A stretch of 64,000 bases of DNA from Macrostomum lignano (GCA_002269645.1 NIVC01003354.1:38634-102633), one strand, 5' to 3'. Shown: positions 4,850-54,944, counted from the stretch's first letter. Made by a program: numbers and translations. Notes: a model not told the origin generated them from the letters alone.

Positions 4850-5795
4850 GAGTTTTTAATTGCATCCAAACTTTCTGACTAATGCCTTCGTGTGTTCCAA
4901 AGAAGGAGACACTGATTCATGGGGTGTGTACATTGACAAATGCAGTTGCAAGTTGCGTGCAAGTTTGTTGACAAAAAGCAGAGCGGAACAAAGATTGTCT
5001 ACGTGATTGACACTTCGGGCCAGGCGGGCTGTGTCAACGTTACTCGAATTCGCCGAGGCGGCGTTGGAATAAGTGATCCAAAAGCCGGTTTGCATCGCCA
5101 ACTATTCGTCTTTTATGGGCGGCGTAGATCGCCTGGACAGTGGACTCCAGCCGTACCATCCGAACAGGAAGACGCAGAAAGGTTTCAGAAGCTCGGTTTT
5201 CACATCATCCTCCTTCTAGTTCGCAATGCTTGGATCGTTTATCAGAATGCTGGAGGAACAAAGAGCTTCCTCAGCTTCCTGGAAGTTGCGATCAAGAATT
5301 TGATTGAACAATCTGGGCCAGGCAGACGTTGCGTTTCGGTTCGGGTCGGTCGAGCACCCGCCGCAGCCGGGCACATTCCAAGCAAGTCGGGCCAGGTTGT
5401 TGGGCAAAATCGACCGAGGCGTCGATGCCGACAGTGTCAAAAGAAGACAGTGTACGTCTGCTCGCAGTGTCCTGGCGTCCCACCATACTGTGTCTTGTGA
5501 ACTGCTTTGGCACGTGGCACAATAATTAAAGAACCATTATCATCTTCTAAGGTGTTGGAAAGCTTTGAATGCTTTTGAAATTTGAATAAAACTTTCCCGC
5601 TATGTTTGCTGGTTTGTTACTGTTGTTACTGTTAATACGAGCCATCTTTGAAAGGTTTGTTTGCTTTACTTCTATTATTGGTCGAGTTCGACCCATAGCC
5701 GACTGGAACGGTGGGAAGATCGAGAATTTGTGCGCTGGCCATAGATAGTTGTAAGTGGTCAAAAACGACCTTCCCGACTTCTTAAGGTTTTAACC
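4850..5795 (+). mobile_element. piggyBac-family transposon remnant (3' part of transposase, frameshifted, probable right end)
   Basis: Contains VACKFVDKK..IVYVIDT and IANYSSFMGGVDRLD (piggyBac YN..MGGVD motif, ~5095-5140, different frame). Followed by FQKLGFHIILLLVRNAWIVY and a C-terminal Cys-rich domain RRRCRQCQKKTVYVCSQCPGVPPYC..NCFGTWH. The likely terminus ggtcaaaaacgacc...cttaaggttTTAA is at ~5757-5793. No matching left end found. Confidence 0.85.
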
Positions 5796-6122
5796 TTAGT
5801 AGTAGTCCAGCTGCATTATTACCTTAAATTACCCTTACGACCTGCTAACTGCAGCTTTCTGTTTTGTATCCATGCAGCACTACTAGCCTTCTACTCACTA
5901 GCCTGCATGTTTAAATGATTAATAAAATCAAAGTAGGACTACTGGGTTATGATTTTCACGTGACAAGTATCTAAGCTGCAGATACTACTACTCGAGAATG
6001 AATGATTGAATTTCTAGTTATTACAAAGCGGGATCGGGATCCGGATGGTCTATCCCGGGATTTTTTAATCCCGGACAATTGTGATCGCAGGATTGTATCC
6101 CTACGACATGCATGATCATGCT

Positions 6123-6382
6123 AGCTATTGCGCAGCGCATCTGATTACGGCTGTTCAGTCCAAGGACTGGAAGGTCGCCACACACTACCCTCAATTACAT
6201 GATGTATCCCAGCTAATGTCGGCACCCATTTTACAGCTGGGTGAACTTAAGCAATGTGGAGTTAAGTGACTTGCTCAATGACACAAATTGTTCCAGTGGG
6301 ATCGGGAATCGAACCCCCGGACCTTCAAGTCGTGAGTTCAACGTACGCTGCTCTAGCCACTAGCATAGCTAGGCTACAACCC
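6123..6382 (-). mobile_element. tRNA-derived CORE-like SINE, copy 1 (diverged)
   Basis: Same sequence family as 21778, 32499 and 50392. The minus strand has a B box (ggttcgattcc) and a gtgtcattgagcaagtcacttaactc..cagctgtaaaatggg core resembling the MIR/CORE domain. Confidence 0.85.
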
Positions 6383-13200: not shown

Positions 13201-15384
13201 ATGCATGTAATTAAGCCACCTAATGTCCTTGAACCATGAATGCATTCTGTTCAGCACGCACATGTACATGTCAGCATGACTATACGGCTATTACTTAATA
13301 GTTGTTCACGTGTCAACGCGCATGGCCAGGCCGGGCATCAAGAAAAAGTGCCTCATTGAACACTTGGGTATCGTGAAGCTTTTCATTATTAACCAGTTTA
13401 ATCCCGTACTGACCGTAGGACCTACTCGTAATGTTACTCCTTGCTTTGACTAGCTAGTGATTATTTGCTGAACCGTACATGTATTATTCTACAAAAAGGA
13501 TGGAACCATGCAGGAAACTAAGTTAGCTGAAGACCTGCAAAATTAACAATAATGGTTTGACCGTCCTAAATTTCATTCAATCTCAGCTGAGGATTAAATC
13601 TTCGGCTAGGGGAAATTCGAAAATCTAAAGTGAATGAGATTTTCAAGCTTTTTGAGCAAGGTTACTGTGTAGAAATCAGACAGGCCTTTTTGGGTGCTAT
13701 TGACTTGGGAATTAGGGTAGAATAGTAATAAGGAGCGGGGCAATTTTTCCCATTATTCCTAGATCAAGCTGCTCACGAGAGATTAGGAAAATAATGTATT
13801 TCATATTTCAAATGCGGCTTAGGGCATGCCGATTATGTCTGGGCAAGCCAAACACAAGAGAAAATGAATTTCTACCACATGCAAAAGCAGAGGGCCGAAG
13901 CTTATAGCGCTGTTTCGTGACTCAAGTGCGCCGTTTGCTGATGACATCGATAGCCATAGCTTTTATCCAGATTGAATTTGCAGGGAATTTGCCGGTGAAG
14001 GCCGGATCCGATTGCCATTTCTTATTAGTGTAGTTTGGAGAGAAGTGTTGAGTTGCTATAAAATGGCAATGGCAAATCGGGTATTAGATGTCACGACCTA
14101 AAAGCAGGCATTCTTACACTTACATAGCTACTCATGTCTAATTGATGCCTTAGTTCTAATTGATTAGAAACTGAGACCTGCTCAATTAGTCTGATGCTTC
14201 CATGCAATGCAATTAGGCCGTACACCGTACATCCAGCTCGCATGGCTTATAGCAATTTCAACATTGAGTTTGTCGAAACTCGTGTTGCATTTCATTTTTG
14301 CATCGCGTCTATATTGCAAAACATATACTACACTTCAACCGAAAAATAACACCGCTAAAAGGCATTCCTTGTTTCGTCTATCATTTTTGCTTCAAACGGG
14401 AAAGGTCAATGAGTACGGGCCGACTTTAATTTCAAGGGCATGTCTGCTCTAAAAGCAAAATCACTCACAACAAAAGCAGAATGACGTGTGCTACGACAAA
14501 ACCCTGTTTAGCATTGTACAAAAAAGCAAATCCTTACACAAAATTCGTTTTGAAAACACAACTGTATAATTGAAAGTTGGAGTTCTTCAATAATATACCA
14601 TTGCAATCTCGATTCTGGCAAAAGTGACTTCAATCGTGGCAAACTCATACATAAAATATAAACCATCCGGCAAATATGCCTGTGTCACCTGTGAGGCACT
14701 ATTGTGAGTCAGCGCGGGGTCCATAGCTCAGCAGGAGTTCGTACTATTACCGGTTCTCTTTATGTCGAGGTCTTTTGTCACTAAAACTAAAGTCACTTTT
14801 GACAAAGTTGAATGCATCACGGTTGAACTGATTCTGCTGCACGATTGGCCACAAGGTTAATGTTTTGTGTATGGGCGAGGCACAATTGATGTCACTTTTA
14901 TTGAAATGGTATACTTTCGCAAAATTTGATCTCCAGAAACTTGATAATCAACCTTGCACGAAACGCATGCCAGGGCATTTTGCAGCAAAAATCGGGGAAG
15001 GCCTCCAGCGAAATTTTTACGATTTGCGAATGCAACGTCCTGCTTTTAGTTGTCCTTGAGCAGAATCCGGACAGCTCCGCGTAGTCAGCCAGCAGGCAGT
15101 CAACGAAATGCCTCGAGTGCACACCCGAGTGCTGTCTGGTAGGGAGGCCTGCTGCCTGAGCAAGCAGCTCGATCTTGAGCAGTATGACTCGGCGCGGATT
15201 ATGCATTTTTCAAAGCTGTTTGGGGCCCGTAGACGACAAAGTATATTGAAGGTAAATGACTAGAACACATTGAAAATCATTTTAGTGGAACTTGTACGTT
15301 CCCTAGAAAGGCTCAATTCAGGGGTTGGCAAAGTTTTTTTACATCAAGGGCCAAATAGAGAACCTAGCGCATGACTGCGGGCCA

Positions 15385-15890
15385 GAGGAAGTGAGGAGGA
15401 GAAGGAATAGAGAAGAGAAATAAGAGAAAGGAGAGAGCGGAGAAGGAGAAGGGAGGAGAGGAGAAGAGAGGAGAGGAGAGGAGAGGAGAAGAGAGGAGAG
15501 GAGAGGAGAAGAGAAGAGAGGAGAGGAGAGGAGAGGAGAGGAGAGGAGAGGAGAGGAGAGGAGAGGAGAGGAGAATAGAGGAGAGGAGAGGAGAGGAGAA
15601 TAGAGGAGAGGAGAGGAGAGGAGAGGAGAGGAGAGGAGAGGAGAGGAGAGGAGAGGAGAGGAGAGGAGAGGAGAGGAGAGGAAAGAAGATGAGAGGCGAG
15701 TAGAGGAGAGGAGAGGAGAGGAGAGGAAGAGGAGAGGAGAGGAGAGGAGTGGAGAGGAGAGGAGATGAGAGAGGAGAGGAGAGGAGAGGAGAGGAGAGGA
15801 GAGGAGAGGAGAGGAGAGGAGAGGAGAGGAGAGGAGAGGAGTGGAGAGGAGGTGATAAGAGAGAGCTGAAAGAAAGAGAGATGAGAAGAG
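15385..15890. repeat. (GAGAG)n purine microsatellite
   Basis: Direct inspection. Confidence 0.98.
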
Positions 15891-15909
15891 ACAAACCTTA
15901 ATTACAATT

Positions 15910-16530
15910 GTCGCCGGGCGGGAAAGCGCTGGGTCCGGACGAGGTGCCCATCGAGGTATTGCGCATCCGCTGTGTGGCCAGTGAGGTCGCCAGAGAGTAG
16001 TGAACCGGCTGCGTGCTCATCGGCGAGGAGGCGCCCAACGAATGCACCACGGAATACATCGCAGCTAATTCCTCAGAAGCCGCGCACCATAACCTTGAGG
16101 AGTATCAGGGCATCTGTCTTCGGTCGTGGAGTAGTGGCGCAAATTCTGGCTTTTCGCTGAGGCATTGAAGAGGCGCGGATGCTCTAGCAGCTCCTGATTG
16201 TTATCTTGGGAATTCGCAGGCATACAGATTTACAGATTCGTAGATTATGTATTCGTCGGTGGATAAAAATGTAGGCTCACGCTCCCAATGGTGGTACCAA
16301 ATCAGCTGGTTTCCGCCATCATGGCGATGTACTGTGACATGAAACTGCGTGTCAACACCGGACGGCCCATCGAGACCGTTCTGCTTGACAGTAAACTCGC
16401 TCGAATAGCCAAATCAAGCTGGTCTACAACTCGTCGACTTCAAGATCGGCGACAAACGAATTCCAACATGGCACTGTATCAGCGTCCAAGTGACCTGTTG
16501 TGCCATCGGCGACTCCAACTGGTTTTAGGC
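15910..16530 (+). mobile_element. Decayed, internally deleted RTE-clade retrotransposon fragment nested in the hAT element
   Basis: SPGGKALGPDEVPIEVLRIR (KAxGPD pre-RT motif), VPNQLVSAIMAMYCDMKLRVNTG and NMALYQRPSDLLCHRRLQL (RTE C-terminal motif), interrupted by stops and frameshifts. Confidence 0.75.
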
Positions 16531-17006
16531 TTCTGTCAATGGTCTTTACTTCTGTCAACTAACTAATCCTTGCCACTATCCCCAGCTCCATCAACAGTAT
16601 TCAGGGCCTCGCGACTATGGCAATTTAATAATTATTTAAACACAAGAACTGACACAGCATTTTTTTTTGATTTAAGTTACTGATCTCTGGTTCAATTTTC
16701 TCAATTTACTTCAATTTATTATTTAGTTCAAGTGCATCGATAGCAGAATCAAAGCAAGTAAGTGGTTAGCTTTTACATTCAGGACTGATTAGCAGTTTAC
16801 AACAGATGTATTCATGCAACAGCAGACACTAGGATTGAAGTAAAAGGCGAGAAGATGCTTAGATGAAGGTGCGATCAATATAGAGTTTTCTGTTGTGTTG
16901 AGATTATAGGAATAACTAGTGGATTTGAGGAAGCGGAATAACTTTTCAACATGCATATGTCTTTCACGTTTCAGTTTCTGGCTTTCAGAATTCAGTAACC
17001 ATGATG

Positions 17007-17324
17007 TTAGTGGTGATGGTCGTCATGATGGTGGTGATCGTCGTCATGATGGTGGTGATGGTCGTCATGATGGTGGTGATGGTCGTCATGATGGTGATGA
17101 TGGTCGTCATGGCGGTGATGGCCGTCATGGTGGTGCAGGTGATGGTCGTCATGGTGATGGCTGTCATGGTCGTGATGATGGTCGTCGTGGTGGCGATGGT
17201 CCTGGCTTTGGCCGTTATTGGCTAGGTCGAAGAGCATCTTGCCAGTACTGATGGCGTCGGCTTTGGTTAGCAGGGCAGCGGCGCTCATCAGGACGACTGC
17301 CAGAAGTGCGAAATACGAGCCCAT
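17007..17324 (-). CDS. Secreted histidine/aspartate-rich peptide (105 aa; signal peptide plus poly-His/Asp tail), putative metal-binding protein
   Basis: MGSYFALLAVVLMSAAALLTKADA is a hydrophobic signal peptide with an A-D-A cleavage site. The last 64 residues contain 40 His and 19 Asp in DDHHHHH-type units with mixed CAT/CAC codons. Intronless CDS. Confidence 0.72.
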   Translation of the reverse strand: MGSYFALLAVVLMSAAALLTKADAISTGKMLFDLANNGQSQDHRHHDDHHHDHDSHHHDDHHLHHHDGHHRHDDHHHHHDDHHHHHDDHHHHHDDDHHHHDDHHH

Positions 17325-19267
17325 TGCTTGCGGGTGGTGCCAGTGATACCGTGGTACCCTCGTATCTATCAGATTCGGAAATTAGCTCAAATGCTGCTGC
17401 AGCTCTCACTTAAACTGCTGCGCTCGAGACTCAGCCCATCGAACCGGTCTGCACAGTCAGTTTTGTCTGTGTAAACAACCCTGGTGTTAATGCTGCAATA
17501 CGTCCATGGCAGCATTGGGAACGAAACTGTCTTCTTAAACAGATATTTATTTTATTGTCAATGCATTTCAGCGCAGAATTTAATAGAGGTTTTGCTGTAG
17601 GCTGACTGTAGTTAAATGTACTTTTTTAGATCAAAAGACTTTAAGAAGCAGCACACAGAACTGATGTCCCCGATTGCTTAGTTGTATACGTGGGCATGCA
17701 AAACAATTGGACAACAACAACACATGATTTTGTTCATGAATTCGTACGCACCGCGCCCGTCAGACAGTGGCTATTTATGAACAGCTGTGTGTTTTTTGTA
17801 GACGTCTTACATATGATATGTCGCACTTTGACAGTAAAAGCTATAGTGCAGTACATGTAAATGGGCGGATATACTCGTAAGTGGGCCGGATTGCCATTGT
17901 GAAGTTTCAAAGGACCCGAGGGCCGGATAGAGAGGCTTCGCGGGTCGCGTGTGGCCCACAGGCCGGAGTTTGCGGACCCTTGGCTAAATTGATGGCTTTA
18001 ATTTTTACAGTGAATAATACAAACATATTTTTTGGCTAGGACTACGCGTGAGTGGTGACCTTAGCTTTACTCGTAGCTTCTGTGACCATCTAATGTCAAG
18101 GAAATCAGCCCTAGGCAGCTGCTATTCGTCGATTATTTACTTTGCATCGAAACTAGCGACTCACCCGTTCCATGCGCTACATGTAATACCAACGGGATTG
18201 AATAGACAAATGTACTATTACGCCATCGACTTCCAGACTCTCAGCCTGTCCCGGATCTCGCGGTACTCCGCTAACTAATAAATAAAAAGCGAGCTGACGG
18301 CCACGCATTGCCGCGTTGGTCATGCTGTTTTGAGCCCATTAGGCACTCGCCATAGTGGAGTAGTGGAGTATCTCACACACCACAGCCTCTCTGGCCGCGA
18401 AGCCAGCCGTCCCTGGGGGACTGCGATTATCAAATTCCGCTCGTTTTCTTGCTGCTCCGTTGCTGCCGCTCCCGTCTGTAGCTACTGGCTGGTACATGCG
18501 ATTATTCGCTTAGAGAATCAAGCGGAGATCGAGTAGCTGCATCAATGCCGGCAGGTGATCCCCTTGGGGATTTTTGTCGAATCGACGCTGTAATTTCTAG
18601 GGGAAAACGAACCTTGTTTAAGCGTGTGCTGAGTAACAAAGTAAGCCTGCCGAACTACATTTTGTTTTTTGTTGCAATTCTAAGATGTCAACAACCCAAG
18701 TCGAGAGATGGCAAATCAAGACAGAGGAAATTCAAAACACAGGACAACAAATTCAAACTGATATTTTGTTTTATTTTTCTACAGATCATTTTAATTCATC
18801 CCAGAATATTCAGACACATAAACATAAATGATACTCATCATGAAATTCCCACCGAGAAAAGGACGGAGAAATATTCGCGAGTTGCAGAAAACGTACAGAT
18901 ACAAATATCGCAACCCTAAAATAGTATACATAAACAAAATTAAATGAAACAATGCTTTACCGTTTTAGCAGACTCTGAAATTTTAGTTTTCATCACTTAA
19001 GATTGGCAAGATAATTTTCTGCACACACAACGGCTGTCACTAAAAGGGTCTTTTCTTGTCACCGAAACAACTGCAAGCAATCCCTTCGCAGACAGCGGAG
19101 AGGTAAGCAACTTTGATACGTACGCAGGCAAACGCTCATGCAGGGTGCACATCGGCCCTGAAGTTCTTCATCGCTATGGGATGTACATGTACATACACAC
19201 TAATCTTAAAGGATTGACTCTTGTGGGCAAAAATTTAACGGCTACGGCTCCCCCGCAGCAGTCCCGG

Positions 19268-21777: not shown

Positions 21778-22038
21778 GTGCAACCGACAGCTCAGCCGCA
21801 GCCATTGCGCGGCGCATCTGAAGGCTGCGTACGGCTGTTCAGTCCAAGGACTGGGGGGTCGCCACACACCCTCAATTACCCCAGCTAATGCTGGCACCCA
21901 TTTTACAGCTGGGTAAACTGAAGCAATGCAGAGTTAAGTGTCTTGCTCAAGGACACAAATTGCTCCAGTGGGATTCGGGAATCGAACCCATGACCTTCAA
22001 GTCGTGAGTCCGACGCTCTGACCACTGGGCTACAACCC
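21778..22038 (-). mobile_element. tRNA-derived CORE-like SINE, copy 2 (most complete head)
   Basis: The minus strand reads ggggttgTAGCCCAGTGGtcagagcgtcggactcacgacttgaaggtcatgGGTTCGATTCCcg (Pol III A and B boxes). It is followed by gtgtccttgagcaagacacttaactctgcattgcttcagtttacccagctgtaaaatggg (CORE-like). Confidence 0.9.
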
Positions 22039-22422
22039 CCCTCAAAACGGAATACAGGGACGACCCGCAACCGTTCCCATCCTTTCTTGCGTACTATCGA
22101 ATATAGCTATAACTGCGAAGACAAATCCAATTTACTAATCCAGAGTGATAAGAACTTTGAAAAACCTTCAGAGAAAGATTTAAAATAAAAGGAAGAAATG
22201 GAGACAAAGAGGACACAAAAAGTACACAGACTGGGTGGAGACGGCAATTGCAATTCAAACAGGCTTCAGTCGATATCCAGTCAGCTATCCAGAACAGTAA
22301 AAATAAATATTTCAGTTAGGATACGTCGCAGGGAAAAGCAGCTTATCAGAGCTGGAGCCCGGCTGAAGCTGGGGATGCTGGGGCTCGAAGTTCGTGGAGA
22401 CAAGGGGCTGGCGGCTGGCTGA

Positions 22423-22689: not shown

Positions 22690-23345
22690 ATGCTGGGCAC
22701 TGGGATTGCTAGAATGCTGGGCACTGGGATTCTGAGCACTGGGATTCTGAGCACTGGGATGCTGAGCACTGGGATTGCTAGAATGCTGGGCACTGGGATG
22801 CTGAGCACTGGGATACTAGGATGCTGAGCACTGGGATTGCTAGAATGCTGGGCACTGGGATTGCTACAATGCTGGGCACTGGGATTGCTACAATGCTGGG
22901 CACTGGGATTGCTACAATGCTGGGCACTGGGATTGCTAGAATGCTGGGCACTGGGATGCTGAGCACTGGGATGCTGAGCACTGGGATGCTGAGCACTGGG
23001 ATGCTGAGCACTGGGATGCTGAGCACTGGGATGCTGAGCACTGGGATGCTGAGCACTGGGATGCTGAGCACTGAGATGCTGAGCACTGGGATGCTGAGCA
23101 CTGAGATGCTGAGCACTGGGATGCTGAGCACTGGGATGCTGAGCACTGGGATGCTGAGCACTAGGATGCTGAGCACTGGGATGCTGAGCACTGGGATGCT
23201 GAGCACTGGGATGCTGAGCACTGGGATGCTGAGCACTGGGATGCTGAGCACTGGGATGTTGAACACTGGGATGTTGGGATACTGAGCGCTGGGATGAGAT
23301 GGCAATGGGATGGCAATGGGATGGCAATGGGATGGCAATGGGATG
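22690..23345. repeat. Composite intronic minisatellite: 15-bp (gggatgctgagcact) and 24-bp variant, then 11-bp (gggatggcaat)
   Basis: Direct inspection; NCS intron 2 near the acceptor. Confidence 0.95.
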
Positions 23346-32753: not shown

Positions 32754-33827
32754 GACAATACAAATTCCGACCACAAAGTTCTGGAAAAAACTCTAAAAGA
32801 CATATTCGAGAGTACTAAAATGATTAGACTATCATTTTTGCAAGCGAGATAGTAAAGACGGATACATGAGCCGTCCTGGTAGTAGCGGAAAGGTTATTTG
32901 GGAGGATATTAGGGATGCGGCCGCGCCTCTCTACGCTGAGTCCGGCATAAATATTTCAGGCGGCTTTTCTCTCCCACTTCTCTCCGCATCCTTCTCCCCT
33001 GAGCCTCCAGAGCCCTGGGTCCGATGCTCCCCCCCCCCCCCCCCCGGATCGGCCTGGCAGCTGGGCTCGCCATCTGCGGGCTGAAGCTGGGAGACGCACA
33101 GGGAGGGGAGAACACGCCGTTGGGATCAATGGCCGGTCTGCCGCGGCCGTGGATGCGCCACAAAACATCGCGCACGGGAACGTAGAGGAGGGGAACTGCC
33201 GGCTAGGAAGAGGAAGAGCTCTAGGAAGAGTGGGTAAAAGACTTGGAACGGATGGGAATCTGGGGATGGGAGGCTGCGGAAGTGCTGAACGCAAGCTAGG
33301 TGTGTCTGGAGCTCGTCTTCCTGCAATTCCTCATCCCTTTATCCTTTCTGCAGCGCCACACATCCCATGTCCCTATCTGCGGCTCACCCTAGCCAGCCGC
33401 CTGCTCAGCCCTCCAGTTATACGGCAGTTTTTTCCGCATCAATACGGAGCTACATGTACTAGAAGATAGCTTTGACTTTCTTTATACTATCAGTAGCAAT
33501 TACCGCATTTTTTCAGTTTAGCCAGCTACGCACAAAACAATGACAGGCAGTCCCCAGCGGGAAGAGCTCGGATTCACTTGCTGGCCCTGGTGGAGAAGGA
33601 GGCTGGGCGGCGGTGCAGCTGGATGCGCATGAATAATTACGGATCCCTTTCGAGTCTGGCCCGGCCCAGTTGAGGTAAATCAGATTAGTCCCATGTTCGC
33701 TGGCGGGTTGGCAGCCTTATGGAAACTATTTATACACGTAGAGACGGGGGCGAAGATAGAAAGTCGAAATAAATGAAGAAGGTTGGAAAGCCGGCACATG
33801 TAGCGGATTTGTGGAGGGCTGCACGAG

Positions 33828-36800
33828 CAATTCAACTCCAACTAGGACACCTGGATTGTTGCAATTAGACCCCAATTGGGACACCTGGATTGTTGCAATT
33901 AGACCCCAATTGGGACACCTGGATTGTTGCAATTCAACTCCAATTGGGACATCTGGATTGTTGCAATTAGACCCCAATTGGGACACCTGGATTGTTGCAA
34001 TTAGACCCCAATTGGGGCACCTGGATTGCTGCAATTCAACTCCAACTAGGACACCTGGATTGTTGCAATTCAACCCCCATTGGGACACCTGGATTGTTGC
34101 AATTCAACTCCAACTAGGACACCTGGATTGTTGCAATTCAACCCCCATTGGGACACCTGGATTGTTGCAATTCAACTCCAATTAAGACACCTGGATTGTT
34201 GCAATTCAACTCCAATTAAGACACGTGGATTGTTGCAATTCAACTCCAATTAAGACTCGTGGATTGTTGCATTTCAACTCCAATTAAGACACGTGGATTG
34301 TTGCAATTCAACTCGAATTAAGACACCTGGATTGTTGCAATTCAACTCGAATTAAGACACCTGGATTGTTGCAATTCAACTCCAATTAAGACACGTGGAT
34401 TGTTGCAATTCAACTCCAAATAAGACTCCTGGATTGTTGCAATTCAACTCCAATTAAGACACCTGGATTGTTGCAATTCAACTCCAATTAAGACACGTGG
34501 ATTGTTGCATTTCAACTCCAATTAAGACACCTGGATTGTTGCATTTCAACTCCAATTAAGACACCTGGATTGTTGCAATTCAACTCCAATTAAGACACCT
34601 GGATTGTTGCAATTCAACTCCAAATAAGACACCTGGATTGTTGCAATTCAACTCCAATTAAGACACCTGGATTGTTGCAATTCAACTCCAATTAAGACAC
34701 GTGGATTGTTGCAATTCAACTCCAAAAAGGACACCTGGATTGTTGCATTTCAACTCTAATTAAGACACGTGGATTGTTGCAATTCAACTCCAATTAAGAC
34801 ACCTGGATTGTTGCAATTCAACTCTAATTAAGACACCTGGATTGTTGCAATTCAACTCCAATTAAGACACGTGGATTGTTGCAATTCAACTCCAAATAAG
34901 ACACCTGGATTGTTGCATTTCAACTCCAATTAAGACACGTGGATTGTTGCAATTCAACTCCAAATAAGACACGTGGATTGTTGCATTTCAACTCCAATTA
35001 AGACACCTGGATTGTTGCAATTCAACTCCAATTAAGACACCTGGATTGTTGCAATTCAACTTCAAATAAGACACCTGGATTGTTGCATTTCAACTCCAAA
35101 TAAGACACGTGGATTGTTGCAATTCAACTCCAATAAAGACACCTGGATTGTCGCAATTCAACTCCAATTAAGACACCTGTATTGTTGCAATTCAACTCCA
35201 ATTAAGACACCTGGATTGTTGCATTTCAACTCGAATTAAGACACGTGGATTGTTGCAATTCAACTCCAATAAAGACACCTGGATTGTTGCAATTCAACTC
35301 GAATTAAGACACGTGGATTGTTGCAATTCAACTCCAATTAAGACACCTGGATTGTTGCATTTCAACTCCAATTAAGACACGTGGATTGTTGCATTTCAAC
35401 TTCAATTAAGACACGTGGATTGTTGCAATTCAACTCCAATTAAGACACCTGGATTGTTGCAATTCAACTCCAATTAAGACACCTGGATTGTTGCAATTCA
35501 ACTCCAATTAAGACACGTGGATTGTTGCAATTCAACTCCAATTAAGACTCGTGGATTGTTGCATTTCAACTCCAATTAAGACACCTGGATTGTTGCAATT
35601 CAACTCCAATTAAGACACCTGGATTGTTGCAATTCAACTCGAATTAAGACACCTGGATTGTTGCAATTCAACTCCAATTAAGACACCTGGATTGTTGCAA
35701 TTCAACTCCAAATAAGACTCCTGGATTGTTGCAATTCAACTCCAATTAAGACACCTGGATTGTTGCAATTCAACTCCAATTAAGACACGTGGATTGTTGC
35801 ATTTCAACTTCAATTAAGACACGTGGATTGTTGCAATTCAACTCCAATTAAGACACGTGGATTGTTGCAATTCAACTCCAATTAAGACACGTGGATTGTT
35901 GCATTTCAACTTCAATTAAGACACCTGGATTGTTGCAATTCAACTTCAATTAAGACACGTGGATTGTTGCAATTCAACTCCAATTAAGACACGTGGATTG
36001 TTGCAATTCAACTCCAATTAAGACACGTGGATTGTTGCATTTCAACTCCAATTAAGACACGTGGATTGTTGCAATTCAACTCCAAATAAGACACCTGGAT
36101 TGTTGCAATTCAACTCCAATTAAGACACCTGGATTGTTGCAATTCAACTCCAATTAAGACACCTGGATTGTTGCATTTCAACTTCAATTAAGACACGTGG
36201 ATTGTTGCAATTCAACTCCAATTAAGACACGTGGATTGTTGCAATTCAACTCCAAAAAGGACACCTGGATTGTTGCATTTCAACTCCAATTAAGACACGT
36301 GGATTGTTGCAATTCAACTCCAATTAAGACACCTGGATTGTTGCAATTCAACTCTAATTAAGACACCTGGATTGTTGCATTTCAACTCCAATTAAGACAC
36401 GTGGATTGTTGCAATTCAACTCCAAATAAGACACCTGGATTGTTGCATTTCAACTCCAATTAAGACACGTGGATTGTTGCAATTCAACTCCAATTAAGAC
36501 ACGTGGATTGTTGCATTTCAACTCCAATTAAGACACCTGGATTGTTGCAATTCAACTCCAATTAAGACACCTGGATTGTTGCAATTCAACTTCAAATAAG
36601 ACACCTGGATTGTTGCATTTCAACTCCAAATAAGACACGTGGATTGTTGCAATTCAACTCCAATAAAGACACCTGGATTGTTGCAATTCAACTCCAATTA
36701 AGACACCTGGATTGTTGCAATTCAACTCCAATTAAGACACCTGGATTGTTGCATTTCAACTCGAATTAAGACACGTGGATTGTTGCAATTCAACTCCAAT

Positions 36801-39800
36801 AAAGACACCTGGATTGTTGCAATTCAACTCCAATTAAGACACCTGGATTGTTGCATTTCAACTCGAATTAAGACACGTGGATTGTTGCATTTCAACTTCA
36901 ATTAAGACACGTGGATTGTTGCAATTCAACTCCAATTAAGACACCTGGATTGTTGCAATTCAACTCCAATTAAGACACCTGGATTGTTGCAATTCAACTC
37001 CAATTAAGACACGTGGATTGTTGCAATTCAACTCCAATTAAGACTCGTGGATTGTTGCATTTCAACTCCAATTAAGACACCTGGATTGTTGCAATTCAAC
37101 TCGAATTAAGACACCTGGATTGTTGCAATTCAACTCGAATTAAGACACCTGGATTGTTGCAATTCAACTCCAATTAAGACACCTGGATTGTTGCAATTCA
37201 ACTCCAATAAGACTCCTGGATTGTTGCAATTCAACTCCAATTAAGACACCTGGATTGTTGCAATTCAACTCCAATTAAGACACGTGGATTGTTGCATTTC
37301 AACTCAATTAAGACACGTGGATTGTTGCAATTCAACTCCAATTAAGACACCTGGATTGTTGCAATTCAACTCCAATTAAGACACGTGGATTGTTGCATTT
37401 CAACTTCAATTAAGACACCTGGATTGTTGCAATTCAACTTCAATTAAGACACGTGGATTGTTGCAATTCAACTCCAATTAAGACACCTGGATTGTTGCAA
37501 TTCAACTCCAATTAAGACACGTGGATTGTTGCATTTCAACTCCAATTAAGACACGTGGATTGTTGCAATTCAACTCCAAATAAGACACCTGGATTGTTGC
37601 AATTTAACTCCAATTAAGACACCTGGATAGTTGCAATTCAACTCCAATTAAGACACGTGGATTGTTGCATTTCAACTTCAATTAAGACACGTGGATTGTT
37701 GCAATTCAACTCCAATTAAGACACGTGGATTGTTGCAATTCAACTCCAAAAAGGACACCTGGATTGTTGCATTTCAACTCCAATTAAGACACCTGGATTG
37801 TTGCAATTCAACTCCAATTAAGACACCTGGATTGTTGCAATTCAACTCCAATTAAGACACGTGGATTGTTGCAATTCAACTCCAATTAAGACACGTGGAT
37901 TGTTGCATTTCAACTCCAATTAAGACACGTGGATTGTTGCATTTCAACTCCAATTAAGACACGTGGATTGTTGCATTTCAACTCCAATTAAGACACGTGG
38001 ATTGTTGCAATTCAACTCCAATTAAGACACCTGGATTGTTGCATTTCAACTTCAATTAAGACACGTGGATTGTTGCATTTCAACTTCAATTAAGACACGT
38101 GGATTGTTGCAATTCAACTCCAATTAAGACACCTGGATTGTTGCAATTCAACTCCAATTAAGACACGTGGATTGTTGCATTTCAACTCCAATTAAGACAC
38201 GTGGATTGTTGCAATTCAACTCCAAATAAGACACGTGGATTGTTACAATTCAACTCTAATTAAGACACCTGGATTGTTGCAATTCAACTTCAATTAAGAC
38301 ACGTGGATTGTTGCAATTCAACTCTAATTAAGACACCTGGATTGTTGCATTTCAACTCCAATTAAGACACGTGGATTGTTGCAATTCAACTCCAAATAAG
38401 ACACCTGGATTGTTGCATTTACACTCCAATTAAGACACCTGGATTTTTGCAATTCAACTCCAATTAAGACACCTGGATTGTTGCAATTCAACTCCAATTA
38501 AGACACCTGGATTGTTGCATTTCAACTCCAATTAAGACACGTGGATTGTTGCATTTCAACTCCAATTAAGACACGTGGATTGTTGCATTTCAACTCCAAT
38601 TAAGACACGTGGATTGTTGCAATTCAACTCCAATTAAGACACCTGGATTGTTGCAATTCAACTCTAATTAAGACACCTGGATTGTTGCATTTCAACTCCA
38701 ATTAAGACACGTGGATTGTTGCAATTCAACTCCAAATAAGACACCTGGATTGTTGCATTTCAACTCCAATTAAGACACGTGGATTGTTGCAATTCAACTC
38801 CAAATAAGACACGTGGATTGTTGCATTTCAACTCCAATTAAGACACCTGGATTGTTGCAATTCAACTCCAATTAAGACACCTGGATTGTTGCAATTCAAC
38901 TCAAATAAGACACCTGGATTGTTGCATTTCAACTCCAAAAGACACGTGGATTGTTGCAATTCAACTCCAAAAGACACCTGGATTGTTGCATTTCAACTCC
39001 AATTAAGACACCTGGATTGTTGCAATTCAACTCCAGGACACCTGGATTGTTGCAATTCAACTCCAATTGACACCTGGATTGTTGCAATTCAACTCCAATT
39101 AAGACACCTGGATTGTTGCAATTCAACTCCAATTAAGACACGTGGATTGTTGCAATTCAACTCCAATTAAGACACCTGGATTGTTGCAATTCAACTCCAA
39201 TTAAGACACGTGGATTGTTGCATTTCAACTCCAATTAAGACACCTGGATTGTTGCATTTCAACTCCAATTAAGACACCTGGATTGTTGCAATTCAACTCC
39301 AATTAAGACACCTGGATTGTTGCAATTCAACTCCAATTAAGACACGTGGATTGTTGCAATTCAACTCCAATTAAGACACGTGGATTGTTGCAATTCAACT
39401 CCAATTAAGACACCTGGATTGTTGCAATTCAACTCCAAATAAGACACGTGGATTGTTGCATTTCAACTTCAATTAAGACACGTGGATTGTTGCATTTCAA
39501 CTTCAATTAAGACACGTGGATTGTTGCAATTCAACTCCAATTAAGACACCTGGATTGTTGCAATTCAACTCCAATTAAGACACGTGGATTGTTGCATTTC
39601 AACTCCAATTAAGACACGTGGATTGTTGCAATTCAACTCCAATTAAGACACCTGGATTGTTGCAATTCAACTCCAATTAAGACACCTGGATTGTTGCAAT
39701 TCAACTCCAATTAAGACACGTGGATTGTTGCATTTCAACTCCAATTAAGACACGTGGATTGTTGCAATTCAACTCCAAAAGACACCTGGATTGTTGCATT

Positions 39801-42800
39801 CAACTCCAATTAAGACACGTGGATTGTTGCAATTCAACTCCAATTAAGACACCTGGATTGTTGCAATTCAACTCCAATTAAGACACCTGGATTGTTGCAT
39901 TTCAACTCCAATTAAGACACGTGGATTGTTGCAATTCAACTCCAATAAGACACCTGGATTGTTGCATTTCAACTCCAATTAAGACACGTGGATTGTTGCA
40001 ATTCAACTCCAATAAGACACGTGGATTGTTGCATTTCAACTCCAATTAAGACACCTGGATTGTTGCAATTCAACTCCAATTAAGACACCTGGATTGTTGC
40101 ATTTCAACTCAATTAAGACACGTGGATTGTTGCATTTCAACTCAATTAAGACACGTGGATTGTTGCAATTCAACTCCAATTAAGACACCTGGATTGTTGC
40201 AATTCAACTCCAATTAAGACACGTGGATTGTTGCATTTCAACTCCAATTAAGACACGTGGATTGTTGCAATTCAACTCCAATAAGACACCTGGATTGTTG
40301 CAATTCAACTCTAATTAAGACACCTGGATTGTTGCAATTCAACTCCAATTAAGACACGTGGATTGTTGCAATTCAACTCCAAATAAGACACCTGGATTGT
40401 TGCATTTCAACTCCAATTAAGACACGTGGATTGTTGCAATTCAACTCCAATTAAGACACCTGGATTGTTGCATTTCAACTCCAATTAAGACACCTGGATT
40501 TTTGCAATTCAACTCCAATTAAGACACCTGGATTGTTGCAATTCAACTCCAATTAAGACACCTGGATTGTTGCATTTCAACTCCAATTAAGACACGTGGA
40601 TTGTTGCATTTCAACTCCAATTAAGACACGTGGATTGTTGCATTTCAACTCCAATTAAGACACGTGGATTGTTGCAATTCAACTCCAATTAAGACACGTG
40701 GATTGTTGCATTCAACTCAATTAAGACACGTGGATTGTTGCAATTCAACTCCAATTAAGACACGTGGATTGTTGCAATTCAACTCCAATTAAGACACCTG
40801 GATTGTTGCATTTCAACTCCAATTAAGACACTGGATTGTTGCAATTCAACTCCAATTAAGACACCTGGATTGTTGCATTTCAACTCCAATTAAGACACCT
40901 GGATTGTTGCATTTCAACTTCAATTAAGACACGTGGATTGTTGCAATTCAACTCAATTAAGACACCTGGATTGTTGCAATTCAACTCCAATTAAGACACG
41001 TGGATTGTTGCAATTCAACTCCAATTAAGACACGTGGATTGTTGCAATTCAACTCCAATTAAGACACCTGGATTGTTGCAATTCAACTCCAATTAAGACA
41101 CCTGGATTGTTGCATTTCAACTCCAATTAAGACACGTGGATTGTTGCATTCAACTCCAATTAAGACACGTGGATTGTTGCAATTCAACTCCAATTAAGAC
41201 ACCTGGATTGTTGCAATTCAACTCCAATTAAGACACCTGGATTGTTGCAATTTCAACTCCAATTAAGACACGTGGATTGTTGCATTTCAACTCCAATTAA
41301 GACACCTGGATTGTTGCAATTCAACTCCAATTAAGACACGTGGATTGTTGCAATTTCAACTCCAATTAAGACACCTGGATTGTTGCATTCAACTCCAATT
41401 AAGACACCTGGATTGTTGCAATTCAACTCCAATTAAGACACCTGGATTGTTGCAATTCAACTCCAATAAGACACCTGGATTGTTGCAATTCAACTCCAAA
41501 AAGACACCTGGATTGTTGCAATTCAACTCCAATTAAGACACCTGGATTGTTGCAATTCAACTCCAATTAAGACACCTGGATTGTTGCAATTCAACTCCAA
41601 TTAAGACACCTGGATTGTTGCAATTCAACTCCAATTAAGACACCTGGATTGTTGCAATTCAACTCCAATTAAGACACGTGGATTGTTGCATTTCAACTCA
41701 ATTAAGACACGTGGATTGTTGCAATTCAACTCCAATTAAGACACCTGGATTGTTGCAATTCAACTCCAATTAAGACACCTGGATTGTTGCAATTCAACTC
41801 CAATTAAGACACCTGGATTGTTGCAATTCAACTCCAATTAAGACACGTGGATTGTTGCATTCAACTCCAATTAAGACACCTGGATTGTTGCAATTCAACT
41901 CCAATTAAGACACCTGGATTGTTGCAATTCAACTCGAATTAAGACACCTGGATTGTTGCAATTCAACTCCAATTAAGACACCTGGATTGTTGCAATTCAA
42001 CTCCAATTAAGACACCTGGATTGTTGCAATTCAACTCCAATTAAGACACCTGGATTGTTGCAATTCAACTCCAATTAAGACACGTGGATTGTTGCATTCA
42101 ACTCCAATTAAGACACGTGGATTGTTGCAATTCAACTCCAATTAAGACACGTGGATTGTTGCAATTCAACTCCAATTAAGACACGTGGATTGTTGCAATT
42201 CAACTCCAATTAAGACACCTGGATTGTTGCAATTCAACTCAATTAAGACACGTGGATTGTTGCAATTCAACTCCAATTAAGACACCTGGATTGTTGCAAT
42301 TCAACTCCAATTAAGACACCTGGATTGTTGCATTTCAACTCCAATTAAGACACGTGGATTGTTGCAATTCAACTCCAATTAAGACACCTGGATTGTTGCA
42401 ATTTCAACTCCAATTAAGACACCTGGATTGTTGCAATTCAACTCCAATTAAGACACCTGGATTGTTGCATTTCAACTCCAATTAAGACACCTGGATTGTT
42501 GCAATTCAACTCCAATTAAGACACCTGGATTGTTGCAATTCAACTCCAATTAAGACACGTGGATTGTTGCAATTCAACTCCAATTAAGACACGTGGATTG
42601 TTGCATTTCAACTCCAATTAAGACACGTGGATTGTTGCATTTCAACTCCAATTAAGACACGTGGATTGTTGCAATTCAACTCCAATTAAGACACCTGGAT
42701 TGTTGCAATTCAACTCCAATTAAGACACGTGGATTGTTGCATTCAACTCCAATTAAGACACGTGGATTGTTGCAATTCAACTCCAAATAAGACACCTGGA

Positions 42801-43975
42801 TTGTTGCAATTTAACTCCAATTAAGACACCTGGATTGTTGCAATTCAACTCCAAAAAGGACACCTGGATTGTTGCATTTCAACTCCAATTAAGACACCTG
42901 GATTGTTGCAATTCAACTCCAATTAAGACACCTGGATTGTTGCAATTCAACTCCAATTAAGACACGTGGATTGTTGCAATTCAACTCCAATTAAGACACG
43001 TGGATTGTTGCATTTCAACTCCAATTAAGACACGTGGATTGTTGCATTTCAACTCCAATTAAGACACGTGGATTGTTGCATTTCAACTCCAATTAAGACA
43101 CGTGGATTGTTGCATTTCAACTCCAATTAAGACACATGGATTGTTGCATTTCAACTCAATTAAGACACGTGGATTGTTGCATTTCAACTCAATTAAGACA
43201 CGTGGATTGTTGCAATTCAACTCCAATTAAGACACCTGGATTGTTGCAATTCAACTCCAATTAAGACACGTGGATTGTTGCAATTTCAACTCCAATTAAG
43301 ACACGTGGATTGTTGCAATTCAACTCCAATTAAGACACCTGGATTGTTGCAATTCAACTCCAATTAAGACACCTGGATTGTTGCAATTCAACTCCAATTA
43401 AGACACGTGGATTGTTGCAATTCAACTCCAATAAGACACCTGGATTGTTGCATTTCAACTCCAATTAAGACACGTGGATTGTTGCATTCAACTCCAAATT
43501 AAGACACCTGGATTGTTGCATTTCAACTCCAATTAAGACACCTGGATTTTTGCAATTCAACTCCAATTAAGACACCTGGATTGTTGCAATTCAACTCCAA
43601 TTAAGACACCTGGATTGTTGCATTTCAACTCCAATTAAGACACGTGGATTGTTGCATTTCAACTCCAATTAAGACACGTGGATTGTTGCATTTCAACTCC
43701 AATTAAGACACGTGGATTGTTGCAATTCAACTCCAATTAAGACACGTGGATTGTTGCATTTCAACTTCAATTAAGACACGTGGATTGTTGCAATTCAACT
43801 CCAATTAAGACACGTGGATTGTTGCAATTCAACTCCAATTAAGACACCTGGATTGTTGCAATTCAACTCCAAATAAGACACCTGGATTGTTGCAATTCAA
43901 CTCCAATTAAGACACCTGGATTGTTGCAATTCAACTCCAATTAAGACACGTGGATTGTTGCATTTCAACTTCAAT
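33828..43975. repeat. Large satellite array, 34-bp monomer (ggattgttgcaattcaactccaattaagacacct), roughly 300 copies, degenerate left edge
   Basis: Continuous head-to-tail monomers with no spacers. Recurrent variants cct/cgt and gcaatt/gcattt. Diverged monomers at 33828-34190. Confidence 0.99.
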
Positions 43976-44892
43976 TAAGTTGGTAAAATCTCAACGGCAC
44001 ATCGTGAACATAAATCTACGTTGTATTAGACTTTTAAAACGCAAAAAAGAATTGCAAATTACGTTTAAATGCCACAGTCAGCACATTTACTACATAGCCA
44101 GTTCTTTTTTATGCGACGGACAATGCAACACTTGGCTATGCTGGCAGAGCTGCAGAAGTCTTTGCAGCACTTGGCAATTATGCCGGTTGCGCTTTCTTCG
44201 CACACCTGGCTAGAAGAAACGCAATGTGCAGGCGGATCCAGAATGCCAGTATATACGTGTAACGCAAGAACCCTCACCCCCCAGACGTAGTCATAAGTGC
44301 CCGCGGTTCCGCTGGATTGTTTGACTGAACACCGGTAACCCTTCTTCGCTATGCCTAAGGCTCTCCTATGCGTCTGCGTGGGGCCGCCGGCCAGCCAATT
44401 CATCAAGGGGGTCTGATAGCCCATTTTGGAAGTGATTTACCAGGCCGCGGCCGCACCCACACGCAGGGCCAATCGCATTTTCTGCTCCAGCCAAGTCGAG
44501 GGTAAATGCCGCCGGTTGAAATGCTTTTGGCAGGCAAGCCCGAAAGAGGTTGGGAATGAGGATTTTATGAAGGGGAAGAAGGTACCCGAGCGGCGCGGGA
44601 AGCCGGGGTCACAAAAATAAAATTGCTGCTGCGACTGAAAACTGTGCACAGCGCCCGAGTAGGCCAACTATGGGGGCGCGAATATCAATTTTTTTCGAGC
44701 GAACTTTTTTTCCGCCTGGCGATGTACTTTTTGCATGCGGTGGCCAAAGCTTTGCTCAGTTTCGTTGATGAAGGCTGATTATAAATCTAATATTTGTCCA
44801 GTCTAGGAGGTTTATATTGTTAACTTACAAAGTAAATTGGTCGAAATTGGAAACCAGTGGCAAAGTATAAGTGAAAAAAACTGTGTAGAGCC

Positions 44893-47439: not shown

Positions 47440-48253
47440 TCAGGCTGTGAAGTTTGCTGGGATGACGCCCGGATTAACCTCGTTGCCGGACTTAGGGAAG
47501 AAAAAGATGATGGAGAGCATGATGGTGAGAACGTAGATTAGGAAGAACAATCGGTCCAAGACCAGTGCCACGGAGCGCCACTCCTGCACCACCTTATTGA
47601 CCTTCTCCCGGTTCTCGTGCAGCTTCTGAATGTAGCGCAGCGCCTTCACAATGTCCTGCACGTCTTTGGTCAGCATGTTGATGCGCCGCCTCGTGGCCGC
47701 GTCCAGCATCCCGCCTGGGAAGATCAGATCTTCCCCGCTGGGGAATGAGAGCAGCTGGTGCTGCTGGTGCTGGTGCTGGTTGTGTTGATGCTGCACCCTA
47801 CTCTGCTGCCTGTGCAGGCACTGAGCCAGTACATCATCGAACTCTTGAAAACCAGCACCTCCTCCGCCGCCGCCTCCTCCAGATCTCGACGTCCCAGCGG
47901 CATCGTTAACCGGTCGTCGACGATCTGACGGCGATGCCGCCGCCGCCGCCGCCGCCGCCGCCGCGGCCATGGTAGGAGGGCGCGTAGTGCGGCGATGAGT
48001 TGCCGGCGTGTAGCGAATAGCCCGGAGATGTGATGGCGGAGGCTGAGGCTCCAGTTGGCTGCATCGGCAGGTCCTCGTAGCAGCGGGAGCCGCCAGCGTC
48101 CCCGCCGCCGCCGACACCGCGCCGCTGTTGGCGACGATCAGAATTTCCAGCCGGCGTAGAGTTCGCCCTGGACGCCGAGGGCACCAGGCCGGAGGCCGGT
48201 GGCTTCCGGTTGAGGTTGACGAACAGCAGGCGGGAGCCGTGCTGGATGGCGAG
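47440..48253 (-). CDS. Anion-selective-type nAChR alpha subunit, exon 7 of 7 (M3-M4 loop, MA helix, M4, stop); one apparent frameshift
   Basis: Acceptor ctctgcag|CTC (LAIQHGSRLLFVNLNRKP...). The C-terminus is in the +1 frame: DIVKALRYIQKLHENREKVNKVVQEWRSVALVLDRLFFLIYVLTIMLSIIFFFP, with the canonical EW..VA.VLDRLF M4 signature. Confidence 0.9.
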
Positions 48254-48283
48254 CTGCAGAGGTGGCCGGTTGGGACTGTGAGT

Positions 48284-48890
<607 letters not shown>

Positions 48891-49514
48891 CAAATGACAT
48901 GTCAGAGACATAAGCATTACATCTACCCCACTCTCTCTTAAAAAGTCCAATAGCAGACAAGAAAAGCAGAGCCTATTAAGCACACCATCAGAGCTTTACC
49001 CGACTGTTGACCAGGGGTTGGGTGGCTTAGCAACAAGGATGGTATCTGGCCTGAAATTACCCCCCTCCCTCCATAAAACCCAGGAGACGAAAATAGAAAA
49101 GCAAGCAAAGGCAGCAATTGTTGCTCCAGATTTGAATGATCGATCAGAGATGGCCGAACTCACGGATGCCCCGGGAAGGAAGGCCGGCCTGCAGAAGCTG
49201 CGGCAGAGCAAACAGACCGGCATGAAGTCAATGAACTTAGCCAAACTTTCTCCCGATCTCATCAGTTTTGTCTTGTGTTTTCTCTCGCATGTCAATTTTC
49301 ATCGGTTTATCCCGGTGAAAGCCGGGGAGGCCCAGCTCGAGAAGCGGAGGCTGAGGATAAGCTCAGCTTAATCTGTAGCGAAATTGCCGCATTTTTTGTG
49401 TTTCCCTGCGGTTGAATATTCTTATACCAGCTGGAGAAATTAGTCACGACTAAACTGGCGCATTGAAACCGTTTTGAGAAGTGAGCGGATGAGGCTGCTA
49501 AGACTTTTAGGTGA

Positions 49515-50030
49515 TGTGAAATTCTTCAAGCTTGTGAACTTTCGACTTAGTGAATTTTCAAGTGTGTGAACTTTCGACTTAGTGAATTTTCGAGTGTGTG
49601 AACTTTCGAGTTTGTGAACTTTCGAGTATGAGAACTTTCGAGTTTGTGAACTTTCCAGTTTGTGAACTTTCGAGTGTGTGAACTTTCGAGTTTGTGAACT
49701 TTCCAGTTTGTGAACTTTCGAGTGTGTGAACTTTCGAGTTTGTGAACTTTCCAGTTTGTGAACTTTCGAGTTTGTGAACTTTCGAGTATGAGAACTTTCG
49801 AGTTTGTGAACTTTCCAGTTTGTGAACTTTCGAGTGTGTGAACTTTCGAGTGTGTGAACTTTCGAGCTTGTGAACTTTCGAGTGTGTGAATTTTCCAGTT
49901 TGTGAACTTTCGAGCTTGTGAACTTTCGAGTTTGTGAACTTTCGAGTTTGTGAACTTTCGAGTTTGTGAACTTTCGAGTTTGTGGCTTGTGAATTTTTGA
50001 GTTTGTGAATTTTTGAGCTTGTGAATTTTT
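49515..50030. repeat. Intronic minisatellite, 16 bp (gtttgtgaactttcga)
   Basis: About 30 copies. Confidence 0.95.
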
Positions 50031-50253
50031 GAGCGCGTGAAAACTTGTCTTTCGGTGGCATAAAATTTTAAAATTATGAACCGCCCTCAGCTCTGCTTAT
50101 TGATGGACACTGCAAGAAGCATCTTTACATATCGGCTCCACTTCACTGAAAGCCCATCATCATCAGTAAATGAAATTTTGAAGGCTGATTTACACCACAA
50201 TGCCTAGTCGTCCTTTGAATTAAGCAAAAGCCAACTAAACAGCCCGTTCTCAC

Positions 50254-50372
50254 CTTCTTAAGCCAGTAGGGCACCTCCTGCCGGTTGTCGCCGCGGAAGT
50301 GGAAGTTCACCACGATCACGGACAGGAAAGTGGACAGGGTGATGATTCCCATGTTCAAGCAGTAGTACTGGC
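50254..50372 (-). CDS. nAChR exon 6 (M3)
   Basis: actttcag|GC CAG TAC...AAG AAG|gtgaga; 119 nt. Translation GQYYCLNMGIITLSTFLSVIVVNFHFRGDNRQEVPYWLKK. Confidence 0.93.
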
Positions 50373-50391
50373 CTGAAAGTTTTAACCGGAT

Positions 50392-50608
50392 GCATTTGAA
50401 GGCTGCGTACGGCTGTTCAGTCCAAGGACTGGGGGTCGCCACACACACCCTTAATTACTCCATCGCACCCATTTTACAGCTGGGTGAACTGAAGCAATGC
50501 AGAGTTAAGTGTCTTGCTCAAGGACACAAATTGTTCCGACTGGGTCGAGAATCGAGCCTCCGACCTTCCATTCGTGAGACCGACGCTCTAACCACTAGGC
50601 TACAGCCC
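50392..50608 (-). mobile_element. tRNA-derived CORE-like SINE, copy 4 (3'-truncated, abuts the exon 6 acceptor)
   Basis: Same family as copies 1-3. Head on the minus strand: gggctgtagcctagtggttagagcgtcggtctcacgaatggaaggtcggaggctcgattctc. Confidence 0.88.
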
Positions 50609-51338: not shown

Positions 51339-51416
51339 GGTTACGGCGAGGGGGGGGAGTAGCGCAGCGGTAACTCCCGCGCCAAACGGTCCTGGGTTCG
51401 ATTCCGTGCGTAGCCA
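51339..51416 (+). other. tRNA-like 78-nt element (rearranged pseudo-tRNA or Pol III-type RNA)
   Basis: GGTTACG (51339-45) pairs with CGTAGCC (51409-15). Contains an A-box-like TAGCGCAGCGG and a B box GGTTCGATTCC, but no recognisable anticodon arm and a mismatched T stem. Confidence 0.45.
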
Positions 51417-51614
51417 CATTAATTTTACAACCCTTGAGGGCCAGCCTTCAGAGAGTGTGCATGTCTGACGAGGAGAGAAGTCAGGCTGAGTGTGACACCG
51501 CGTGAGCGCGTCCTCTTGGCTGGCTGCATGTGGCCCAAAGCACCTCTGTGACCAGGTAACTAATGAAGGTTATGGCGAGTACCTGAAGCACCAGACAGAT
51601 TTCTGTGGACTCAC

Positions 51615-51701: not shown

Positions 51702-51714
51702 CTGCGGATGGGAA

Positions 51715-54905: not shown

Positions 54906-54944
54906 CTGCGGAACAGAGAAGTGACGATTTGGGTTGCGACGCTT

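Follow-up and report, generated by a model that had tools for sequence, protein, structure and literature searches.

The minus strand of Macrostomum lignano contig NIVC01003354.1 carries an open reading frame (ORF) of 105 codons (ATG to TAA, 17007–17324) in which a signal-peptide-like leader and a short unique spacer run into a tail rich in histidine and aspartate. We give a nearly even chance to the reading that this ORF is a young, species-restricted, single-exon gene for a secreted His/Asp peptide of M. lignano, and transcription, translation in the His/Asp frame, secretion, metal binding and a role in the organism are what we infer for it. All positions are counted within the window, the whole stretch of 64,000 nucleotides (64 kb) that was analysed. 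The features on which the argument draws are the following.

17253–17324, minus strand: start codon and 24-codon signal-peptide-like leader MGSYFALLAVVLMSAAALLTKADA (from sequence and heuristic score)
17202–17252, minus strand: unique 17-codon spacer ISTGKMLFDLANNGQSQ (from sequence)
17010–17201, minus strand: 64-codon His/Asp tail with the unit DDHHHHH, encoded as GAC GAC CAT CAC CAC CAT CAT (from sequence and Tandem Repeats Finder, TRF)
17007–17009, minus strand: TAA stop of the His/Asp ORF (from sequence)
16992–17006, minus strand: in-frame CAT CAT GGT TAC TGA (HHGY and a second stop) after the TAA, the degenerate 3′ edge of the array (from sequence)
17382–17384, minus strand: closest in-frame upstream stop, TAA, 19 codons 5′ of the ATG (from sequence)
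16715–16720, minus strand: AATAAA, a candidate polyadenylation signal 290 nt 3′ of the stop (weak, in an AT-rich flank)
17010–17182, no strand assigned: 21-nt minisatellite array, 8.1 copies, 82% matches, 9% indels (TRF)
16985–17167, minus strand: coding sequence (CDS) of 60 aa, MTAITMTTIT...NIMVTEF, in the second open minus-strand frame of the array (from a public gene index)

The ATG at 17324, which has G at both −3 and +4, is preceded by no other ATG within 115 nt, being the first one downstream of 17439, and the ORF that it opens exceeds all others at the locus in length. Judged by our own heuristic rather than by SignalP, the leader has the n, h and c regions of a classical signal peptide, with small residues at −3 and −1. 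Its h-region, FALLAVVLMSAAALL, spans 15 aa and is too short for a transmembrane anchor, and candidate cleavage sites of the AxA type lie between TKA and DA or between ADA and IS. The tail consists of 40 His, 19 Asp, two Arg and one each of Ser, Leu and Gly. The first-pass annotation had described the same architecture (a 24-aa signal peptide, then a short spacer, then a tail of 64 aa that includes 40 His and 19 Asp) and had noted the HHGY that continues in frame beyond the TAA (17006–16992); both descriptions are confirmed from the sequence. The predicted mature peptide comprises 81 aa (~10 kDa, calculated pI ~6.1, zero Tyr), with a calculated net charge of ~+21 at pH 5 and ~−17 at pH 8.1, the pH of seawater, and the unique tryptic peptide of the His/Asp frame is MLFDLANNGQSQDHR.

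Evidence for coding rests on the 41 unique codons ahead of the repeat, where it is of reasonable strength. We scored the 197 ATG-initiated ORFs of at least 40 aa in the window with a signal-peptide heuristic that requires an uncharged hydrophobic core followed by small residues at −3 and −1. The leader ranked first with a score of 40.3, ahead of a genuine transmembrane exon of a nicotinic acetylcholine receptor (nAChR) at 39.8, and the remaining ORFs scored 27 or less; across 200 dinucleotide-preserving shuffles, ~0.2% of ORFs equalled the leader. Codon usage was scored as a log-likelihood trained on only 869 codons from genuine M. lignano genes and compared with a null of GC-matched, stop-free 41-codon windows from the non-genic parts of the window. 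Leader and spacer together reach +15.5 bits in the His/Asp frame, a score attained by only 0.28% of null windows, and the five other frames give −15.4, −11.8, +1.6, −8.0 and −11.7. By codon position, the GC content of leader and spacer is 0.59/0.41/0.71, and third-position GC (GC3) in the same frame is 0.71 in the leader versus 0.56 immediately upstream and 0.35 downstream. The signal-peptide and codon statistics are correlated, because Ala, Leu and Val raise both.

These figures bear on a second reading to which we assign a considerable probability, short of even, namely that the locus is a minisatellite without coding function, which may be transcribed at a low level, and that the 105-aa frame is a chance ORF. 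Under this explanation a stop-resistant CAY/GAC repeat happens to adjoin a flank rich in GC and poor in stops, whose translation resembles a hydrophobic leader. That the leader appears coding-like in exactly the frame that enters the His/Asp tail, with both the codon score and the signal score in the far tail of their respective nulls, argues against such an accident, as does its possession of the first ATG in 115 nt. The same shuffles also lend the explanation support, since 42% of shuffled 64-kb windows carry at least one ORF with an equally good leader, and someone scanning 64 kb for interesting features could well meet such a leader by chance.

The repeat itself contributes little to the case for a gene. 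Four of the six frames across the array are open, and an open frame across the repeat is therefore no better than chance; no single-step mutation turns a CAY or GAC codon into a stop. Wrap-around alignment to the unit shows degenerate units at the 5′ end and four near-identical last units with one base differing, which is a signature of recent slippage and speaks for the non-coding explanation. Successive units measure 5, 5, 7, 8, 6, 7, 7, 7 and 7 codons, each change being a multiple of 3 nt, and we give this regularity little weight because triplet-structured repeats slip by multiples of three without selection. In a neighbouring neutral array at 22714–23273 the frame does change internally, with HPSAQ giving way to IPVLS. 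Within the His/Asp array, GC3 of the His/Asp frame is 0.62, with CAT more frequent than CAC, well below the 0.80–0.92 of genuine exons in the window, which again favours the non-coding explanation. Between-unit substitutions, counted as 4, 5 and 9 at the three codon positions, were considered as evidence of selection and rejected, because register shifts among CAT, CAC and GAC mimic synonymous and His-to-Asp changes.

The first-pass annotation had treated mixed CAT/CAC and GAC/GAT codons as an argument against a neutral repeat. The mixture is present for His (CAT 23, CAC 17) and nearly absent for Asp (GAC 18, GAT 1), and the argument built on it does not hold: the order of CAT and CAC is set by the unit CAT CAT GAC GAC CAT CAC CAC, and the mixture belongs to the duplicated 21-nt unit in a minisatellite-rich genome. 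The pattern excludes a pure trinucleotide microsatellite, yet it is typical of a 21-nt minisatellite. The proposal of a secreted peptide keeps the support of its architecture, of a leader that is coding-like in that frame only and of a gene call on the same strand, and loses that of the codon mixture.

The surroundings of the array are equally repetitive. The window contains 62 TRF rows, dozens of minisatellites among them, and its long ORFs are all repeat-derived, with other minisatellites yielding ORFs of up to 503 aa, which favours the non-coding explanation; 15% of the M. lignano genome consists of simple or tandem repeats (PMC5730564). Head-to-tail units, recent near-identical copies, several open frames and repeat-rich surroundings were all found for the array, as for a minisatellite, and these features do not exclude a coding minisatellite, with which they are compatible too. 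A gene for an nAChR subunit occupies 47440–55000 on the minus strand, with introns packed with minisatellites (for example 54929–56087 and 52544–53405). In its cytoplasmic-loop exon (47440–48117) there are runs of Ala, of Gly and of His/Gln, which shows that genuine M. lignano exons can contain low-complexity repeats.

Across 25 kb around the locus, the public gene-position index lists two genes only, a calcium sensor (NCS2) and the 60-aa CDS in the other open minus-strand frame. The product of this CDS starts with MTAITMTTITCTTMTAITAM, ends in NIMVTEF and is indexed on three M. lignano contigs, and an exact-product look-up in the records returned no match for the 105-aa His/Asp product. The GenBank annotation combined RNA-seq transcript models (StringTie, TACO and TBONE) with TransDecoder ORFs, and it dropped non-coding and repeat-overlapping transcripts (PMC5730564). 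As the index calls are sparse and intron-aware, a GenBank rather than an ab initio origin is indicated for the 60-aa CDS, and we infer that it stems from this RNA-seq-based annotation, which would imply a minus-strand transcript model. The survival of a same-strand CDS in an annotation that discarded non-coding transcripts counts against the locus being a non-coding minisatellite.

The index entry also raises the question of which frame is used. We regard it as very unlikely that the indexed 60-aa Thr/Ile/Met-rich peptide, which starts inside the repeat, is the true product and that the His/Asp frame is untranslated. Besides being on record on three contigs, this peptide has the ATG context ACCATGA and a third position of G or C in 7 of 7 codons per unit, matching the GC3 bias of M. 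lignano, and over the array its codon log-likelihood is +22.2 versus +6.4 for the His/Asp frame under the same 869-codon training set. That high score, however, is one 7-codon unit counted eight times, and a hexamer-based scorer would favour the Thr/Ile/Met frame regardless of biology, because all codons of the unit end in G or C and the genome is GC3-rich. Moreover, the peptide has no targeting signal, only its seven C-terminal residues are unique sequence, it is not in the protein cluster collection, and on an mRNA that begins upstream of 17324 a scanning ribosome would reach the His/Asp ATG before that of the peptide. We conclude that the 60-aa CDS probably arose as an artefact when a hexamer-based caller chose between ORFs in a GC3-rich genome; the database entry probably either has the wrong frame or does not merit the status of a CDS.

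A further explanation, to which we assign a very small probability, assigns the ORF to a larger gene, as its first exon or as a pseudogenised piece of it, with either the ectodomain of a LIV-1-type ZIP transporter or a downstream NCS2 exon in view. ZIP7-like transporters are generally known to carry a stretch rich in H and D after an N-terminal signal peptide. The NCS2 gene, which shares the strand of the ORF, is 5.1 kb upstream, and 38.8% of M. lignano genes are trans-spliced (PMC5730564). A regular-expression search of all six frames of the 64 kb found no ZIP motif of the HExPHE or HNF type, however, and ahead of the TAA and TGA that stand in frame the repeat offers no GT donor. Within ~3 kb Pfam found no domain, and no ZIP protein was among the matches of any search. 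An origin as exon 1 of a ZIP transporter was accordingly rejected, as the window holds no ZIP motif and no Pfam Zip domain and no splice donor precedes the stops.

The upstream NCS2 gene has three exons on the minus strand (27730–27617, 24719–24447 and 22611–22426); the rebuilt protein matches M. lignano PAA51809.1 (BOX15_Mlig005148g1) exactly and is 93% identical to its Protopolystoma counterpart. The PAA51809.1 locus on NIVC01003354.1 (assembly Mlig_3_7, GCA_002269645.1) agrees with the window at 100% identity over 12423–37730. The gene exists in at least three near-identical copies on different contigs, together with an older paralogue at a locus here called L003 (90% identical protein, 81–86% identical exon DNA). 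The DV1 assembly is partly redundant owing to duplicated chromosomes (PMC5730564), and the NCS2 copy number agrees with this known redundancy. Divergence between the near-identical copies is very uneven, with ~0.06% beside ~2.5% within 6 kb.

The second genome copy of the locus, on NIVC01001503.1, shows zero differences over window positions 15679–17607 (1.9 kb), two differences across 15679–19181 (~3.5 kb) and ~2.5% divergence at 13238–14802. Because the copies are identical around the ORF, this comparison says nothing about selection.

Several other elements of the window were recorded. A 10-kb satellite at 33827–43979, upstream of the calcium-sensor gene, comprises ~300 copies of the 34-nt unit GCAATTCAACTCCAATTAAGACACCTGGATTGTT at 94% identity, and a perfect 12-nt repeat, CCCTCACCCTAA, runs for 9.3 copies at 60983–61094, an internal position, and includes the telomere-type hexamer CCCTAA. 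A tRNA-Val(CAC)-like sequence lies at 21966–22041 on the minus strand (Rfam, 33 bits; ARAGORN), and its neighbourhood, which translates as APILQLGELKQCRVKCLAQGHK, occurs again at ~6069–6266 and at 50390–50788, both on the plus strand, which suggests a dispersed tRNA-headed SINE-like element and not a working tRNA gene. An element of 75 bp at 19115–19187 recurs with ~80% identity at L003 8950–9023 and 26412–26485, in both flanks of the paralogous NCS2, and is probably a short dispersed repeat. Candidate reverse-transcriptase fragments at 16267–16563 and 2241–2495 and a piggyBac-like C terminus at 4940–5497 were discarded for want of Pfam support.

Searches for relatives of the ORF returned no homologue. 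A word-indexed search of 5.8 billion proteins gave no homologue of the 105-aa ORF at E ≤ 0.01, and an exhaustive HMMER search of 1.84 billion representatives gave no true homologue, its single match (E = 6e-4) being a bacterial-looking, His-containing sequence that we read as compositional. For the same query, Pfam yielded sub-threshold noise only and PDB nothing. The 64-kb window holds no paralogue of the ORF; the older NCS2 paralogue locus has neither a His/Asp run nor a tblastn match in the 10 kb downstream; and the Protopolystoma NCS2 contig has nothing downstream of NCS2 but is too short for a comparison of synteny. No His-rich protein of Macrostomum came to light in searches of the literature. 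That homologue, paralogue and syntenic counterpart all went unfound is in keeping with a non-coding minisatellite. Cs1 of Clonorchis, however, combines a signal peptide with acidic tandem repeats and has no orthologue in Opisthorchis (PMC6091968), so missing homologues are not decisive for secreted repeat proteins of flatworms, and reproduction-related genes evolve fast within Macrostomum (PMC7336406). The check that had been proposed, for paralogues or orthologues with a conserved leader, thus found none and points neither way.

The first-pass annotation had further suggested that the peptide was truncated by a recent stop. Read by eye, the repeat unit does resume past the TAA as CAT CAT G, and the same TAA stands at 17007–17009 in the second genome copy. 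Deriving TAA from CAT or CAC needs two substitutions, an alternative origin being a 3-nt insertion. TAA is the least leaky stop codon, and readthrough would add five codons. The case for a recent stop is weak, and little depends on the age of the stop.

Points in favour of a gene include the top leader score, codon bias in one frame, the first ATG, the longest ORF and a same-strand CDS. If the ORF is such a young gene for a secreted His/Asp peptide, its reading frame would open with a cleavable signal peptide encoded by unique sequence and continue into a 21-nt coding minisatellite. Cleavage of the leader near residue 22–24 would release an intrinsically disordered His/Asp polyampholyte of 81 aa and ~10 kDa, whose charge is predicted to switch sharply around pH 6. 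From the chemistry of His clusters and carboxylates, its His clusters, with Asp as co-ligand, would be expected to chelate Zn, Ni, Cu or Co, and the tail would lengthen and shorten as the 3′ end of the array slips in frame. The roles that had been put forward for it, as a component of mucus or adhesive, a chelator or an antimicrobial, are guesses from composition, with no homologue in protein searches, Pfam or PDB. We also consider, as an unlikely scenario of gene birth, that the minisatellite expanded beside a fortuitous leader within the M. lignano lineage, after NCS2 duplication, and so produced a new secreted metal-binding peptide with a length adjusted by slippage; its mRNA would hold two overlapping frames, His/Asp and Thr/Ile/Met, and one or both of them may be translated.

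Were the His/Asp gene real, it would add an unannotated or wrongly framed secreted gene to a genetically tractable flatworm model, and it would present a case in which hexamer-based ORF calling in a GC3-biased genome misses the true frame of a coding repeat. Its product would be a natural His-tagged peptide for studies of metal handling or pH-switchable secretion, and the locus a candidate for the recent origin of a gene from a minisatellite. Should the gene prove not to be real, the locus would serve as a warning that in so repeat-rich a genome as that of M. lignano an ORF derived from a repeat and preceded by a plausible leader is to be expected approximately once per two 64-kb windows.

Known systems share parts of this architecture. 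Within flatworms, Cs1 of Clonorchis sinensis resembles the ORF in its signal peptide, short unique region, acidic tandem repeats and lack of a sister-genus orthologue (PMC6091968). Its unit, by contrast, is 21 aa (63 nt) and not His-rich, and secretion has been demonstrated for Cs1, which was cloned from cDNA, whereas the M. lignano ORF is known from sequence alone. Eggshell and vitelline precursors of trematodes are likewise low-complexity secreted flatworm proteins. Vitelline protein C of Fasciola is His-rich, and Macrostomum has no separate vitellaria. Eggshell precursors rely on Tyr/DOPA for quinone tanning, and an eggshell role fits poorly because the mature M. lignano peptide has no tyrosine. 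A proline-histidine-rich protein serves as a vitellocyte marker in Schistosoma (PMC6505934).

In LIV-1-subfamily ZIP (SLC39) transporters, as in the ORF, a signal peptide is followed directly by an H/D-rich stretch, which is disordered in these transporters. The resemblance is confined to this N-terminal ectodomain, as the window lacks a ZIP transmembrane domain and the HExPHExGD and HNFxDG motifs, and the ORF ends in TAA and then TGA.

Human histatins (HTN1 and HTN3) are secreted, short, His-rich, metal-binding and antimicrobial, with a charge that depends on pH, and the predicted peptide is akin to them in secretion, shortness, His richness and pH-dependent charge. Histatins are, however, cationic (Lys/Arg-rich and Asp-poor) and encoded by multi-exon genes of the vertebrate SCPP cluster, and no homology to them was found. 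A flatworm host, a peptide that is anionic at neutral pH and the lack of homology all place the ORF outside the histatin/SCPP group. The Hpn and Hpn-like proteins of Helicobacter pylori, of 60–100 aa and about half His, are disordered and serve in the storage or buffering of Ni and Zn. The ORF product resembles them in small size, His content, disorder and expected metal chemistry, but Hpn is a cytosolic bacterial protein that lacks a signal peptide, carries Cys and Gln motifs and is not built on a 21-nt repeat, and HMMER and Pfam found no homology.

Plasmodium HRP2 shares with the ORF an N-terminal secretory signal, a His-rich, Asp-containing tandem-repeat tail, an expanding coding minisatellite and restriction to particular species. 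Its repeats are rich in Ala (AHHAHHAAD type), whereas the M. lignano tail contains no Ala, and neither the protein searches nor Pfam gave a match to HRP2 or HRP3. His-rich proteins of the HRP2 kind bind haem and metals (PMC2999593); an HRP2-like role in haem binding was rejected, having no basis in a free-living worm that does not feed on blood. Secreted or metal-binding His-rich repeat peptides are thus well known from HRP2, histatins and Hpn, and the M. lignano ORF would be an unrelated new member of this assemblage.
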